Positions 190 to 18,248 of a stretch of 64,000 bases of DNA are shown piece after piece. The notes under the pieces were generated by a model, which worked only from the letters and a program-made list of their open reading frames with translations, had not been told where the DNA came from and did no database searches. The translations under genes and the position numbers were made by a program. Source of the stretch: Amoeboaphelidium protococcarum X5 (lineage: Eukaryota > Fungi > Aphelidiomycota); NCBI GenBank assembly GCA_023515725.1, contig JALDTO010000246.1:157680-221679 (forward strand), given 5' to 3'. Positions within the stretch are counted from its first letter, which is position 1, and every line of letters starts with the position of its first letter.

Positions 190-2427
190 TCATATGGACA
201 TCACGAACTCCTTGTATAGTGTCTAATCCGCTTAGTTCGCAGTAACCAATTTCACTTCTTCCTTAGAAAAACTTCGAGACATAGCATTATATGATCCAAC
301 ATTATCCCGATATGCACGAAAATCACCCAACATGAAGTACTCATCAGCACCAAGACATTTATGTAGCACATTCTGAAACGGATGTTGTTTCGACGTAAAC
401 TCCTCCGTTGTCACGAGCACTTACTTTCCAGATCTAAATATATTAGCTTATGCCATTGCAATAAGTTTCATACGACACTTGTAATGGCTAAACGCCAATA
501 GAGTCTTCCGCGTATTTTTATGGAGAATATGCCCAGAATTTTATTAACCACGCGAGTGTGTTACCAGTACATCGGCCGTATCACTTAGAACGGGAGGTAG
601 ATTCAAACGCTTTCTCCGTTTCTTCACCATCTTAATAGTCAGAAACTCGGGAAGAATGATTAGATCATAATGCCGCATCAAAAAGTTGCCAATTCGGTTA
701 TGCAAATTCGATACATATGCAGAGAATTTGGTGTAAGCACGACTAATGCCAATATCAGTGGGAACAACATTATTCTTTGATTACTTCCATGTGTGCCATA
801 ATTCTTTCTTCTACGCTTTAAACTCCTCCAGACTCAATTGTCCATTCTGTAAAGCAGCTGCGCGATTATCCATCTAATCTTTCAGAGACTATGCATTGGA
901 AATCTATTCACTCTTATTCTTATAAAGCTACTTGAAATCAGGCGCAATCGCAATGAATGACCTGCGATCCAAATCGAAGACGGTCATGCTCACTCTAACA
1001 CCTGGATCCACCGAGCAAGTGTTTCCAGTTTAACGGCAACGCGCATCACGGCGGCTTATAAATGATCTAGCACCTTCAAGATTCTCATCTGCATTATTCA
1101 TATCTTGCAGTTGCTAGTAATACCAATCAGTGAATGGACCTTATATACAGGAGGCATCATACGAAACAATCACAAAGAACTTTTTTCTTCTTTTCACGAG
1201 CTTGAACTCTCTTCCTCTGCCATAGCCAAACTTGATGAAACGGGGCCAGTAGTCAATCTTGCCAGGCTCTTAGAATAGAGGATCTTTGGCATACAGTTTC
1301 CCAAAGCTCTTGAGGAATGAAGGCAGTAGGCGGACGCGATTGCTATCTGGATCTACACGGGCATCTTACGCTTGAAACTGGAGCATCTAAAACTAATCAT
1401 CATCTCTATTTGGCATAAAGTTGTAGTCTTTGATATCACCCTTTGTATACTTCTCATGAGCCGCATAGTAATACGTGCGAGTCGCATTAATAATCTCATC
1501 TTGCACTGTAGATGGCATTCGCATCCAACGCAATCTTGGGTCGTCATCAGGCACGCGGCACTTTTTGGCTTTGACTTAACTTAGCGCAACATGGTTCCTT
1601 AGCGCTTGTATTGACACCTTTTCTCCTTAATCTCTGGAATCATTCAAAATGTTAATGATGAAATTGACCATTTGAAACTTGAGATCCAGCCATTCATTGA
1701 ATTTGTGTATGAACTTCTTATCAGGGAATATACGAATATTAATCGAGCGTATCTGATCATACTGATTCAGTTCGGCAATCTCTCGCCGATTTTTCATCTT
1801 GCCGATTTTTGGTTTCATGTTTTCCAACGCCACTAGAGATTATTCCGAAAGCTGTAGCACTTTCTTCTTCTTCTTCTTCTTCTTCTTCAAACTCTTAGAT
1901 GACGACTATTACTGCTTAGATTTCCATTTAGCCATTAGAGAGTCTGTATCTGATGCAATCTACTGATTCCGCATTTTGGATTCAATGATATTCTCAATTT
2001 AATGCTGCACCTGACTAAAACTTTACTTCTCCTGGCTCTCACTTACGTTTTGTCCCATGTCTTTACGATTCAAATTAGGATTGAACTTTGCTGTTAAGGA
2101 GTGTTCTGTTTATTAAGATTACGGTATTTGCCAGTCCTTGTCAGTGCATTTTAACAACAGTCGTTAATTGAACGCGTCTGTGTTGCCATTCCAAACATAA
2201 TGTCCAAACCATTCAGATTTAGTATTATACCAAGGGGCAAATACTGGAGCAAATGCGGCAAATGATGATGCGCCAAGTTCTTTGACTATCCGAATATCAA
2301 CTTCATTGATCACCTTAGCACACACGGAGAGAAATCCGGGAATATCTTGATGATATGCTTAAGTTTTGAAATCTTCTAGTGCTGTCTTTGCAGCCGCAGA
2401 TAATTCACGTTTTTGGCTTGGCTACAT
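190..2427 (-). CDS. Fanzor2 / IS607-type TnpB-like RNA-guided endonuclease (~745 aa, TAR=Gln)
   Basis: One open frame (joins ORFs 1627-1833 and 232-420) ending at TGA 190-192. It has the HTH-like IRSINIRIFP..FNEW segment, RuvC-I SVDPGVR (D at 1006-1008), LHNRIGNFLMRHYDLIILPEF, LLAFSHYKCRMKL, TEEFTSK (400-405) and RuvC-III YRDNVGSYN (D at 304-306). A K9 tract lies at 1861-1887. Confidence 0.88.
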
Positions 2428-12427: not shown

Positions 12428-13939
12428 ATGAACATGAATGAAGTTGGAAAGCATGATACTCGGCAAGATTGTTGGGTGGTCATACACGGGTCAGCGTATG
12501 ATCTTACGTCATTTTTGGATGAACATCCTGGTGGATCGGCCATCATTTTAAAGTATGCAGGTAAAGATGCTACCAAGGCGTTCGATAGCGTCCATCCACT
12601 GGACATTATCGAGAAGTTGCTATCCCCCGATCTTAGTAAGGGACCTGTAAGTGATGCCCCATCTTACAAGTCCGCATCTGAAATTTCTGCTAGTCAGTCT
12701 CAAGTCTCCGCAGCTGTAGCGTTTAAGCCTGACCTAAATCTGCCGCCACTCGACGCCATCCTTAATCTGACCGATTTTGAAGCTTGTGCTCAATAGCTAA
12801 TGTCCAAGGATGGATGGGCATACTACAGTAGTGCGGCTGATGATGAAGTTACGGCGCGCGAGAATCGGTTGGCTTATCATAGAATCTGGATGAAGCCTCG
12901 CGTCATGGTAAATGTCAAGGATGTTAGTGTCAAGACATCCATACTTGGTTATGATTGCAGTCTACCTGTGTATGTCACAGCGACTGCACTGGGTAGACTT
13001 GGACATCCTGAAGGTGAGGTTGTGCTGACGCGTGCTGCAGCTTCTCACAACGTTATTTAGATGATCCCAACTCTGGCCTCGTGTTCTCTTGATGAAATAA
13101 CTTTGGCTGCACAACCTGGTTAAGTTTAGTTCTTTCAACTGTATGTGAACAGTAACCGTGCTATCACTTAGAATTTGGTTAAGAAGGCTGAGCGATTGGG
13201 CTGTAAAGCTCTATTCATCACAGTTGACGCTCCGACTCTGGCTAAGCGTGAGAAAGATATGCGTATGAAGTATATCCGGACTCCACCAAAAGTTCAAGAA
13301 GGACATTAGATCTAGAGAAGTTAGGGTGCAGCGCGTGCTATTGGTTCATTCATAGATCCGTCATTGTGTTGGGAAGATTTGAAGTGGTTTCGATCCATTA
13401 CCAATCTGCCTATTGTGCTGAAAGGCGTCTAGTGTGCAGAAGATGCTTTATTAGCAGCACAGCACGGCGTTCAGGGCATAGTGATATCTAATCATGGTGG
13501 AAGATAGCTAGATTTTGCAAGATCATCCATTGAGATTCTGCCTGAAGTTATGGATCTATTGGATAAGCATGGTCTGAGGGACAAGATGGAAGTTTATGTT
13601 GATGGGGGTATACGGCGGGGCACAGATATCTTTAAAGCTATTGCGTTGGGAGCTAAAGCTGTTGGAATTGGAAGACCTCTTTTGTACGCCATGTCCACTT
13701 ATGGTCAGCCTGGAGTTGAGCACGCTTTGTAAATACTGAAAGATGAACTTGAAATGGTCTGTAGATTAATGGGAGTGACTGATATTAGAAAGGCCTCTCC
13801 CCAGATGCTATGTCTGAACTCTTTAAACCAGCACACTACTGTAGTGCCAAAAGATTATCTAACTGATGCTCTGTATCAGCGGATGTAACCTCCTTTGCAG
13901 CCATCCAGATCTGAAGTGAAAAGCAAGAGTAAGCTTTGA
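12428..13939 (+). CDS. CYB2: Flavocytochrome b2 (L-lactate dehydrogenase: cytochrome b5 plus FMN alpha-hydroxy acid dehydrogenase)
   Basis: HPGG heme-binding domain, SNHGGRQLD, DGGIRRGTD; ends at TGA 13937-13939. A short upstream exon is possible. Confidence 0.93.
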
Positions 13940-14029
13940 TAGTTATTGTGTCATAAATCTGTCACTTTACTGTCTTTATGAAACTAAACTTTTTTTCATG
14001 TTTTTACTCTACCATGTCATTGACAATCT

Positions 14030-14100
14030 CGTGTACAGTCTATTTCATCGGTTTGTCCGACAAACATTACTGTATATATCAGGCGCGCCTTTCGGCGCGG
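14030..14100 (-). ncRNA. Putative Fanzor1 omegaRNA scaffold
   Basis: On the minus strand, a CGCGCC-GAAA-GGCGCG hairpin (14084-14099) overlaps the last codons. It is followed by a UACAGU/ACUGUA stem (14069-14074 / 14034-14039) that encloses a GUUUGU/ACAAAC hairpin (14051-14065). Confidence 0.5.
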
Positions 14101-16394
14101 CAATTCCATTAAGGTCTGCTACCATGCATCGCGTAATGGCGGACTATTTGAGCCATACTCCTGTAAGCATTAACGTCCCGATCTACAAAGACGTCACATC
14201 CAGTGTTTTGGCAGTTTGGGCAAACTCCAAATCTTGATTGGACTCTTCGGTTAAAACGATCAGGACATTCGTACGATAGGATTTCTGGACCATCAGCTTT
14301 GATGCAGACAGTTTAAGCCCGGCGACGACCAGGCAGTATCTTCTTTGCCTTCTTGTGTCGGCACCTCATCACCACTTCATGCTCCCATTGAAGATCTGCA
14401 TGACATAATGAGTGCTGCTTGCTAGTGTGGAACTCCGGCGTTATAACTACCAATGCCCGACGACTGAATTCAAACGCGAATTTTCTCACCGGAACAGGAG
14501 GATTACCACGCACGTGCTTCACACCAGCGTCACCAAGCGCAATTACCGGAGGCTTATCTGGAGGTGAAAACTTGCCATTAGATTTAAGCAGTTCGCGTTT
14601 CCTCTTCTTTGCAGCTTTACCTCGGCGCCGATCGTTGATTTTAGGCACTGGTGGCTTTGGTCTGCCATACATCATGTTGATGACTTTACCAAACGCAGAC
14701 TTGGTCGCGCAAAATCGTCGGAATCTCCAATTACGATGGAATGATCTTGAGTAGAAGGCATAGACGTCCTCAAAATATCTGATGTAAACATCGAGATACT
14801 ACTGGCAAGTGTTTGATTAGGCCATATCTTACTCCATCAGCGTGATTTCAGTTGGTTTGATATGCAACAGATGGGCTTCAGACTCTGTAGTCAATGCAAG
14901 ACGTTACCAGTATCCAGCAGATATGTGGCCCGTTTCTTTTAGCTCCTTCTTGGCTTCTTTTAGCGTAATTGCACCATCGACGTCCGCGTCGTCGCCCCAC
15001 ACCAGTACGTTCTTCTTACCAGGGTCAACGCCAATCAATCGAGAGCCATCTAATCTTTGTTGGAGATTCCGACAGTTTTCCAAAGCAAAAGCCCCAACAA
15101 TTACTTGAGACACGTCAATGCTTCGTGCTTTTCTCTGCAGGTCTGAAGCTTCATTTGCATACGCTTTCCCACCTTAATCTGAAACAGACACGGAGCACGC
15201 AAAACCATCAGAGGTGATACTGACACTGACGTTTTTAGATTGAGCCATCCGCTGTTAAAGGCCCAAAACTTTAAGCCTTAGGATACATTACCGTTGATCC
15301 TCCTCCTCTTTCGACTCCTCCCCCAACTGATTGCCCAGGCGATACTGTTCAAATCCCCACTGAGCCAAAACTTTATTGTCAAAGCAGATGTGGCGCGGAA
15401 CATCGGTACCAGTAGGGAAAATCTTGAATGATGGCAAGCCTAGCTCCTTGAGAGTTTAACGCTTATACATCAGATATTGGACCAAAACTTTCTAGCCCTC
15501 CTAATTCTGAAATGCATGGTGTGCTCTTGATGGCATGTATGTTTGATGGGTATCACGCTACTTCATCTTACCCGATTTCTATCGCTTGAAACCGATGAGT
15601 CCATGCAGCTGACTAGGAGATTATGCTTTTCTTTTACTGTATCTCCTTCTTGGAGCTCTGTCTTTAAAAGAAGTGGTGACAATATCCAATAAATGGTGAC
15701 GATGCATTGAGACCAAGTGCCGAACTTCTTCAACTTATAACAATTGCAGCAACTCGTCCTTAATAGCAGCATCTTATTGCGCAATTGTCTCCTCATCTTC
15801 ACCAGCATCGTAATCAGGAGGCAAATGTATCTGAGTCGCGGGATTAATCTCCAAGTACTCGCCCCCAAAGTGTTCCATCGTGTTAACAGCTTCTTCAGTC
15901 AGCAAAGAGTTGAGCAGCTATAGAAACACGGTAAGCCTTCGGCCTTTTACATTAAAGGCCTCCATTTAAGCTTTAATCACCTTCTTCTAGTAGACCCATA
16001 TAGTTTCAGTCAGATGCCAGGTGATAGCTTAAATATTCTTACGCGCTTGAAACACGTACAGGTTAGGATTTGGACCAATCAGGCTTTCGTGCCTCAATCT
16101 CTATCGCACTTCAGGAGCGATTGTTTCAGCCAGTATTCGTGTGTGTTCATTGTCACGATGAAACGCAGAGTTGCAAAGATACTCCAGCATTGACGCGAAA
16201 TACTGCTAATGAGATAGCTCAGGTAGTGCCTTGCCGGCTTCATTCCATACATTAAGACTGAGATAGATCAGACGGGATGCAAAGGTGAGGTGCACTGAGC
16301 TCAGTCGAATCTGTGGTATCAATCTCTCTTTATCACCATCGCTAAGATTCAAGACAGTATTTAGTTTGCATTTACGTGTTACTTTCTTTGCCAT
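14079..16394 (-). CDS. Fanzor1 RNA-guided endonuclease (~771 aa, TAR=Gln)
   Basis: One frame joining ORFs 16206-16394, 14904-15113 and 14313-14675. It has FKIFP..PRHICFD, ITSDGFACSV, RuvC-I IGVDPGKKN (D 15024-15026), WRFRRF, VIALGD, RuvC-II PEFHTSK (E 14433-14435), CPNC and RuvC-III DRDVNA (D 14175-14177). Confidence 0.92.
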
Positions 16395-17075
16395 ATCTTC
16401 TTATCTATGAGAAGTTAGATAAGAAAGAGGAAGAAGAAATAGTGAACTGTCTGGCGCTTTTATAGGCCTTTTCAACAAGTCAGTAATTGGAGTTTGCTAG
16501 CCGCTGTAAGAGCCGCTTTTAGTAACGATGAAATTGAATTTCATTACTTGGCACTGTTTGAAAATTTCTAAAGTCAAAAACTACATAATATATAGGAAAA
16601 GTATTCTTATTACTATAATCCATCACTTGATTACTTAAATCTAAAATCGATGGCTTTGAAATTGGCACTTTCCATCACTGGAGAATGAAATAGAGAACTT
16701 TGCGGCATTATCTAAACAGACGTCACATAAGTTACTTATAATTGTTCAAATTACACGTATGCTTCGCATTACGAGTTCTAATACTATCTGTTGTAGGGAA
16801 GTATCGTGCTTAAAACTTCGTCATTATTTTTTGTGCCCAAAACACTTTTCCGTGATCGGACATTTTACTGAAACGAACTGTAATTCCAGTATATCCTTCA
16901 GCGCTTTGTTCAGTCGTTCGTTCGTTCGTTCGATCTTCCTTTCTTTCTCTTCCACCTTAATTCAAAACGGTAGTCTGTTATTACTTTTAAATCCGTGTCT
17001 TTTTATATCACAGAGTGTACTTTAACACCAGCTAATAGTAGAATTTCATCTCCTTTTGCTCTATTGTTTTGAGTA

Positions 17076-18248
17076 ATGTTTAGTTTTGGTGGTAATTAGT
17101 AGAACACAACGGCTCAGTAATAGTAGTAGTAGTTGTAGTAGTAATAGCCTTATTAATAGACTGCGTTTGGTGCTGGATAGACTGGAGGTGGAGGAGGATT
17201 ATTCTCCTTTGGTGGTAATAATACTAACAATAATAATTAATAGCAGCAGTAGCCATAGCCATAGTAGTAACAAACTTCAACTAGTGGTCCGTTCTAATTC
17301 GGATTTGGTTAACCTCCTTAGTAATAGCAGTAGTAATAACCCGCCCAGTAGTAGAACAATTTCTAGTTTGGCTCCAACTAACAACAACAATAGCAACCTT
17401 AGAATGCATAGTAAAATTAGCAAAATATGCAACAACCATAATAGACAAGTGCCGAGTAGTAATAGAGTGAATTGATTTGGAGTCAGTTGGAGGAGATTAA
17501 TGCTTCTTATGATGTCAACAGTCACAAGTACAAGTTCCGGCATGCCTTCTACAATATGGTGCAGAAAGGACAGGTTGGAATGTATTAGAAGCCTAATAAT
17601 ATCCCAGATGGAATGTGGAGTGATGCTCTCCAGTCTTCACCAGATCCATCCTGTATGGTCCCGGTGTTTGCCTAGTCATTTGAGGATCTGTAGAAGAGAG
17701 TGGATTCACAACATAAGCAGTTGAGTTAATTCAAATCTAAAATGCAAGAGGTGATTGCAGATATTGGACTCCTGTCAGATAAGAAGAGTATGCAAGTGGA
17801 GCCCAAGATGACTCAGGTGAGAACTAATCAGTAGAAACTGTAGATTAAACTCTTGAAATGTCTCAAGCATATACAACTATTGGCCAATAAGGATCAATCA
17901 TCACTGAGCAGAAATGAAGAAGAATTGGCTCGTCAATTGAATTAGCTGAACGATCAAGTTCAGTCGTAGAGCTTTACTGGCCTAGTGCAGGATCTGAAGA
18001 GCAAATTTAACCTCTTGTCCAGTGTTCCTAATTATTATTAGCAGTCTCACTAGAATCAGCTATCGAACATATCATCTGTATCTGGATTTGAAGTGTTGGA
18101 TGAGTAGTAGATTGTGGAAATGTTGAATAGCCTGGGGGAAATGTAAAAGTGCCTGGAGCATCTCACCAACGTCCTGAATGAAGATACACGACTATGCTCT
18201 AGTCTTGAGAAGAATATGGCACTTGATAGTGGCAAGAATCGCTTTTGA
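17076..18248 (+). CDS. NUP57: FG nucleoporin Nup54/Nup57
   Basis: FSFGG repeats and Q tracts, then KFRHAFYN...W..A....PDPSCMVPVFAQSFEDLQKR and a coiled coil; ends at TGA 18246-18248. Confidence 0.9.

Follow-up and report, generated by a model that had tools for sequence, protein, structure and literature searches.

Fanzor nucleases are recognised by a RuvC-I DPG motif and a rearranged RuvC-II glutamate placed directly ahead of the zinc finger (Yoon et al., PMC10711439), and in Fanzor1 elements the terminal inverted repeat (TIR) and target-site duplication (TSD) have been described as built into the RNA scaffold (PMC10711439). The native role of Fanzors in their hosts is open, and the best-studied member, SpuFz1, has no known partner transposase (PMC10432273). 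SpuFz1 (PDB 8GKH) is encoded by SPu-1 of Spizellomyces punctatus, a 2.1-kb single-ORF TIR element with a TA TSD and no internal transposase (PMC10432273, PMC3627910), in which a conserved CA together with TA equals the measured CATA TAM (PMC10432273). Among PUl-1, PUl-4 and PGv-1, autonomous and Fanzor-only Tc1/mariner elements have common TIRs and TA TSDs (PMC3627910). Restorative homing was shown for bacterial TnpB and is extended to Fanzor by analogy (PMC13565253).

Judged from its sequence, the locus described here from Amoeboaphelidium protococcarum works like SPu-1/SpuFz1, has the Fanzor1 features that sequence and modelled fold can show, with a variant zinc module, and is not a new kind of system. 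With SPu-1 it shares the single-ORF organisation, the TA TSD, the lack of an internal transposase, two conserved bases left of TA that would complete the TAM, a two-stem right-end scaffold of ~75 nt and the protein fold (E 2e-15, Z 16-17). The two proteins are ~14% identical and differ in length (~633-638 aa for SpuFz1, 771 aa here), and the elements differ in size (2.1 vs 2.85 kb) and left flank (CATA vs ATTA). Unlike SPu-1, the present element has an imperfect bipartite TIR, an HCCC zinc module with a 55-aa Cys/His insertion and the TAR=Gln code; end-pattern searches of the genome found no Fanzor-free ghost copies of it; and a transposase that fits it can be identified, in contrast to Spu-1, for which Saito et al. 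found no such enzyme (PMC10432273).

PpFz1 of Parasitella parasitica (9CF0) and GtFz1 of Guillardia theta (9CER) have the same fold (Z 19.7 and 15.1) and AT-rich TAMs, and PpFz1 has a similarly short SL1 + SL2 scaffold, but their TAMs are ATN and TTAA, identity is 11-16% and their insertions lie in different places (PMC11423790). PUl-1, PUl-4 and PGv-1, although from different hosts, follow the same logic as the helper proposed below; unlike in those cases, related Fanzors here ride on Tc1-like (family A, the window family) and pogo-like (family B) elements in one genome. Fanzor2/IS607 TnpB and IS200/IS605 TnpB share the RuvC triad and a right-end RNA, and Fanzor2 also the DPG and rearranged Glu, but the fold match is much weaker than with Fanzor1 (E 0.16-0.22, Z 9-10), and the present element has TIRs and a TSD and neither a serine recombinase nor an HUH transposase.

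The literature search returned no paper that joins Fanzor with Amoeboaphelidium or aphelids in its main text, and the listed entries of supplementary file 3 of the Saito et al. catalogue (PMC10432273) include at least two A. occidentale proteins and none from A. protococcarum. Quite probably, the locus is a young non-autonomous Tc1/mariner-type element with an intact Fanzor1 nuclease, mobilised by a helper and maintained by restorative homing.

Reading frame and protein

The window is the whole stretch of 64,000 nt that was analysed. Its coding features around the locus are as follows.

12428..13939 (+): CYB2 (cytochrome b2), flanking host gene, convergent with the Fanzor gene
14079..16394 (-): Fanzor1 ORF, 771 aa under TAR=Gln, ATG at 16394, TGA end at 14079
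14175..14177 (-): RuvC-III D740 in RD, from the homolog alignment
14211..14414 (-): TNB zinc module, H661-x2-C664 ... C725-x2-C728, from the homolog alignment
14433..14435 (-): RuvC-II E654, rearranged position, with the first zinc ligand 7 residues further on, from the homolog alignment
15024..15026 (-): RuvC-I D457 in DPG, invariant in 14 homologs
17076..18248 (+): Nup54/NUP57-like flanking host gene, divergent from the Fanzor gene, weakly supported
Motifs by first residue: PRHICFD 333; ITSDG 393; GVDPG 455 (D457); RRRGKAAKKRKR 589; VIALGD 617; PEFHTSK 653 (E654); DRDVNA 738 (D740)

The original prediction described a 771-codon frame interrupted by TAA and TAG alone, with a RuvC triad and a set of Fanzor1 motifs, and all of this was borne out: the frame holds 14 TAA and 9 TAG, a search for in-frame TGA found zero internal ones, and every quoted motif is present. 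The TAR=Gln reading is supported by comparison with an 86%-identical sister subfamily, in which 22 of the 23 TAR codons stand opposite a Gln codon (7 as CAA/CAG), and by similar rates of TAR usage in adjacent host genes; the UAR=Gln code of this organism is published (PMC5304391). That the gene is hidden by its code and missed by standard-code screens proved overstated, as NCBI holds full-length 771-aa proteins, among them P0030, an exact match to the table-6 translation of the window ORF, and near-identical ones annotated as hypothetical with MIR68 tags. What conceals them is divergence, not the code: searches of Pfam and single-sequence searches of PDB with the stop-free pieces and the full protein gave no match. 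Two codons set the window copy apart from all other copies, I120N (16036) and codon 311 (15462-15464; Lys vs Gln/Leu), which are either private mutations or assembly errors. As for the neighbours, CYB2 stands on Cyt-b5 (E 3e-24) and FMN_dh (E 5e-27) matches, whereas NUP57 is a weak assignment from an FG-like N-terminus with repeats and a Nup54 match at E 0.04 on a 33-aa piece.

In a profile search built on 14 homologs, SpuFz1 came first (E 2.2e-6) and GtFz1 second (E 1.2e-4). For the HMM, fold and structure work, the NCBI paralog P0002, 5 substitutions from the window copy, stood in for it. With its AlphaFold model (pLDDT 73, pTM 0.71), the top 7 PDB matches in Foldseek were all Fanzor1 (E 1.9e-15 to 3.3e-10; SpuFz1 E 2e-15), and Cas12, TnpB and Fanzor2 appeared beyond them at E 0.013 or worse (Fanzor2 0.16); VIA-align gave Z 15-20 over 450-525 residues against PpFz1, SpuFz1 and GtFz1, compared with 8.7 against Fanzor2 and 9-10 against TnpB. 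Fanzor1 thus comes out on top by all three methods, with TnpB far weaker than SpuFz1, and at the level of profile and modelled fold the assignment of the ORF to Fanzor1 is confirmed.

Further hallmarks agree with this assignment. The RuvC-I DPG appears as GVDPG and the rearranged Glu as E654; the Bao and Jurka motif, D-X(125,275)-[TS][TS]-X-X-zinc finger-X(5,50)-RD, is present with spacings of 199 and 10 (D457, T657-S658, zinc module 661-728, R739-D740); and the WED motif (SDG at 395 here, TDG in homologs), a length of 771 aa within the 600-800 aa range and a fold nearer Fz1 than Fz2 or TnpB are those of Fanzor1. The one departure from a strict C4 zinc finger is the first ligand position, His661 here (HxxC...CxxC) and Cys in sister family B, which would make the module a variant of the Fanzor zinc finger with predicted zinc binding. 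An insertion of ~55 aa within it carries C678, H680, C697 and C710, which are kept in the aphelid families as well as in some environmental relatives, and may form a second zinc site. The basic stretch at aa 589-600, originally taken as NLS-like, lies within a helix that is basic in all homologs; an NLS is a plausible guess, and the stretch may bind nucleic acid additionally or instead.

The Fanzor was predicted to be intact, and the full ORF and triad are indeed present in the window copy and in others, the triad being invariant among homologs and unbroken in 8 copies plus one copy of subfamily A2. Between the window family and the 86%-identical A2 subfamily, dN/dS is 0.16 at dS 0.44, which shows that purifying selection has acted on the protein while it was written in the code of the host. 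Changes among the youngest copies are mostly non-synonymous, as expected of single copies without selection.

The nearest outside relatives are standard-code environmental proteins, 30-38% identical over the RuvC piece, one protein of Amoeboradix gromovi and several of Radiomyces spectabilis (P0006/L076, P0012, P0016, P0020, P0013, P0018). The window also holds a second TnpB/Fanzor-like ORF at 190-2427 (-), of 746 codons under TAR=Gln, with VDPG, LPE, EEFTSK and YRD motifs, a Lys-rich N-terminal region and no zinc-finger cysteines; its DNA is unrelated to the Fanzor1 family at 14036-16880, and a Pfam search of its stop-free pieces gave no meaningful match.

The element, its copies and its insertion sites

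The interval first assigned to the locus, 14030-16394, was too narrow, and the element is delimited by these features.

14036..16880 (-): whole element, TIR to TIR, 2,845 bp, boundaries common to 12 copies with different flanks
14034..14035 (unstranded): right TA target-site duplication, closing the predicted terminal RNA stem
14036..14060 (+): right imperfect TIR, same bipartite motif as the left
16395..16855 (-): 5' non-coding region with no ORF, presumably promoter and 5' UTR
16856..16880 (-): left imperfect TIR (CAGT..TTTCA-N6-TGTCCGA)
16881..16884 (-): left flank ATTA, i.e. the left TA duplication plus AT; predicted TAM

The search for further genomic copies, by which ends and TSD were to be defined, found 12 of 97-99.9% identity (ten full-length, at 98.5-100%, one internally duplicated and one interrupted) and older subfamilies at 80-86%, and it fixed both the ends and the TA TSD. 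The ORF is complete in eight copies, disrupted early in two and affected by the duplication in one. The gene had been described as sitting alone with no transposase; a transposase is indeed absent inside the element, but the gene is no lone one, given the 12 TIR-element copies and the transposase elements with the same TIR elsewhere. TIRs starting with CAGT, the TA duplication and cognate DDE transposase elements elsewhere in the genome that carry this TIR place it with Tc1/mariner, while the TIRs and TSD set it apart from Helitron and IS607 elements, which lack both and use an HUH enzyme or a serine recombinase. The element is a non-autonomous Tc1/mariner-type DNA transposon whose sole cargo is Fanzor1.

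The internally duplicated copy (L011/L014, C264:380.4-384.1k) has a tandem duplication of ~890 bp and is separated by 140 bp from a pogo element in four copies, and the interrupted one (L013/L015, C213) is split by an insertion of ~510 bp. Short 99%-identical pieces of the element, at depth 2-6 and without host flanks, occur in a 2014 run labelled as another organism and in a hot springs metagenome run, and reflect either trace aphelid presence or contamination.

Of 15 left ends in this genome, 13 are preceded by ATTA and two older ones by GTTA; in a second sequenced strain all five have ATTA, one of these copies being the ortholog of a GTTA copy. Over both strains, ATTA precedes the element at 17-18 of 19 independent sites, compared with a 10% share of ATTA among TA sites within the window. 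At three sites where the second strain carries an insertion, this genome has none but shows one TA and an unbroken ATTA, and one of these sites matches the reconstructed empty sequence at 23/23 positions. These empty orthologous sites prove the TA duplication and show that ATTA predates insertion; mobility, TA duplication and ATTA preference of the element are therefore shown. By analogy with CATA in SPu-1, ATTA is the predicted TAM.

The bipartite TIR occurs outside Fanzor elements at seven genome sites, six of which lie within 0.8 kb of a DDE_3 (Tc1/IS630-type) match, a proximity vanishingly unlikely by chance; on contig C155, a complete TIR pair of 1.19 kb lies beside such a match. DDE_3 elements of this kind lie at C155:71.8-73.0k, C98:191.9k, C162:109.8k, C264:252.5k and C264:1464.2k, and are putatively intact, judged from the absence of TGA in the matches. 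A Tc1-like DDE_3 transposase is thus the likely helper acting in trans. Pogo (DDE_1) was rejected as helper for the window family, since its ends differ (CTGTAAA) and the pogo element near copy L011 starts ~140 bp beyond that copy.

The autonomous element of sister family B measures 4,557 bp and has different TIRs; in it, a 391-aa pogo-type (DDE_1) transposase lies upstream of Fanzor1, and its left flank is ATTA at two independent sites. Its loci are L074, L082 and L083 in the second strain and G000:C207:293-303k in this genome, where the transposase portion forms tandem repeats. At one insertion site, a TIR-like end follows ~70 bp further right and a tRNA-like sequence lies just to the left; the extra end suggests that this copy is nested in a small related element.

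As the A. protococcarum genome is duplicated (PMC10608142), homeologous element-free sites can be compared. Copy L002 lies 90 kb from the window copy in opposite orientation, is 99.86% identical to it and has 3 ORF differences. On the element-free homeolog C136, the sequences that here lie left of L002 and right of the window copy adjoin each other, as do those left of the window copy and right of L002 (G000:C244:171.7k-266.8k vs C136:296.8k and 385.4k; L001, L002, L021, L023). The flanks are swapped: in the assembly, the segment between the copies is inverted relative to C136 and ends precisely at the two elements, which would make the CYB2-NUP57 neighbourhood the derived one. The simplest cause of this inversion of ~90 kb is ectopic recombination between the inverted copies. 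An assembly mis-join through the two 99.86%-identical repeats, with no real recombination, is a somewhat unlikely explanation of the inversion: near-identical inverted 2.85-kb repeats can give exactly such a pattern and the read contigs examined do not span the element, but the contigs of the assembly reach megabase scale, which suggests long reads able to cross 2.85 kb, and the two copies are mutually closest relatives. A second inverted pair with identical proteins, L009 (C245:30987-33838 +) and L008 (C245:90479-93330 -), lies 57 kb apart and may bound a second inversion.

The candidate right-end RNA and the proposed cycle

At the right end, the following RNA features are predicted.

14034..14108 (-): candidate omegaRNA scaffold of ~75 nt that shares the last 9 codons with the ORF; conserved across four families; z -4.4 to -4.6 for the fold
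14085..14098 (-): stem-loop 1, GC stem of 5-6 bp with GNRN tetraloop; 100% of cells paired
14034..14074 (-): stem-loop 2, terminal stem of internal TACAGT with the TIR end and TA; 97% of cells paired
14019..14033 (-): predicted 15-nt guide in the host flank, different in every copy

A candidate omegaRNA at the 3' end had been proposed, and it holds up as a right-end structure (z -4.6) with stems covarying across four families. Three sister families from the same genomes, at 38-48% protein identity, keep both stems with different letters: one pair of stem-loop 1 and three of the six pairs of stem-loop 2 are changed on both sides between families. Across the four families, 98.6% of cells are paired with four two-sided pair changes, which none of 500 shuffles reached, a result that is suggestive and not a probability since the set comprises seven related sequences. 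The arrangement is that of Fanzor1 right ends, in which a structured scaffold incorporates the TIR end and 3' TSD and a variable flank comes next. An Rfam search gave no match. The guide length is set by analogy with the 15 nt of SpuFz1 (PMC10432273). The covariation supports the predicted structure of the putative RNA. In family C (L047-L049, L077), the scaffold, counted from the conserved TGGAAT up to TA, measures only 52-53 nt, has a terminal stem of 5-6 bp and is possibly a very small natural Fanzor1 scaffold.

The cycle envisaged would begin with excision of the element by a Tc1/IS630-like DDE transposase, presumably supplied by other elements with the same TIR, and reinsertion by this helper at AT|TA with duplication of TA. 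Transcription across the right end would yield an RNA of ~90 nt, consisting of the two-stem scaffold including the TIR end and TA, plus ~15 nt of host flank as guide. The RNP would recognise ATTA with the guide match, a sequence present only after the element leaves, and would cut the vacated site, whereupon repair from the sister chromatid would restore the element. The filled site would be immune because its guide match is preceded by TGTA, not ATTA. Mobilisation by this particular helper, RNA production, nuclease activity and sister-chromatid restoration are the steps that we infer, the cutting and restoration from work on TnpB and Fanzor (model reviewed in PMC13565253).

Signs that self-targets are purged were sought with 11 guides. 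For none of them does ATTA stand before a perfect 15-nt target, and the only two sites that match a guide perfectly carry a broken TAM (AATA, TTTT), but two others retain ATTA and differ from the guide at 1-3 positions, and homeolog divergence of 8-18% would explain all of these cases. The two empty sites on the homeolog of the inverted segment lack the TAM, with AATA (guide match 20/20) and ACAA; a microhomology deletion at the second of them was considered and, once aligned, rejected.

Alternative roles and implications

It is distinctly unlikely that Fanzor helps to pick the insertion site, its TAM binding bringing the transposase to ATTA, instead of or besides re-cutting empty sites. Such a role would fit the restriction of ATTA to the left side, since none of 17 right flanks continues TA-AT. 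Symmetric transposase dimers usually produce palindromic site preferences. The two left ends of Fanzor-free DDE_3 elements that were compared are TCTA and AATA (Fisher p ~0.01-0.03), family B with its other transposase class likewise sits behind ATTA, and even 99.9%-identical copies are all at ATTA, with little time for slow loss. Together, the one-sided ATTA and the TCTA and AATA ends give hints, in very small numbers, that Fanzor and not the transposase fixes ATTA. Against this, the comparison includes just two transposase-only left ends, which may be older, and we know of no tested Fanzor that steers insertion. TnpB, moreover, is dispensable for bacterial transposition (PMC3627910).

A protein that is by now a passenger and binds RNA or DNA without cutting, or is unexpressed, in a burst driven by the transposase alone, would be consistent with the His that replaces the first zinc Cys and with young copies lacking an excess of synonymous change; it is very improbable, however, given the invariant triad, the dN/dS of 0.16 between subfamilies, a scaffold conserved in four families of 38-48% protein identity and intact Fanzor ORFs in both strains. 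Domestication by the host, with the nuclease serving defence or regulation from a fixed locus, which the full adoption of the host code and the location between housekeeping genes might suggest, can be almost wholly discounted: the gene is absent from the homeologous locus, insertion sites vary between strains and the TIRs and TSD are intact, so that the empty homeologous and orthologous sites largely refute it.

The host, an algal parasite, offers a recently active element in at least 12 near-identical copies and, with it, a complete young set of parts: a covarying scaffold and a predicted TAM, a probable helper transposase, occupied as well as empty sites from two strains, and homeologs that lack the element. 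This completeness makes a two-component test (transposase with and without Fanzor) feasible in yeast. As a tool, the protein would add a Fanzor1 that is deeply divergent and has ATTA as its predicted TAM; the scaffolds of sister families are perhaps as short as ~52 nt. The TAR=Gln code should block gene function after transfer to standard-code hosts, and such a barrier would fit a long diversification of Fanzor inside one lineage.

A bolder reading, in which Fanzor imposes the orientation-locked ATTA through steered insertion or fast TAM-dependent retention, across two transposase classes and with copies reshaping chromosomes, is unlikely as a whole. If true, it would mean that Fanzor copies reshape chromosomes, as in the 90-kb inversion that swaps TAM-side and guide-side flanks, and that this genome records what Fanzor natively does in a eukaryote, with the nuclease, its RNA and the cognate transposase available together.
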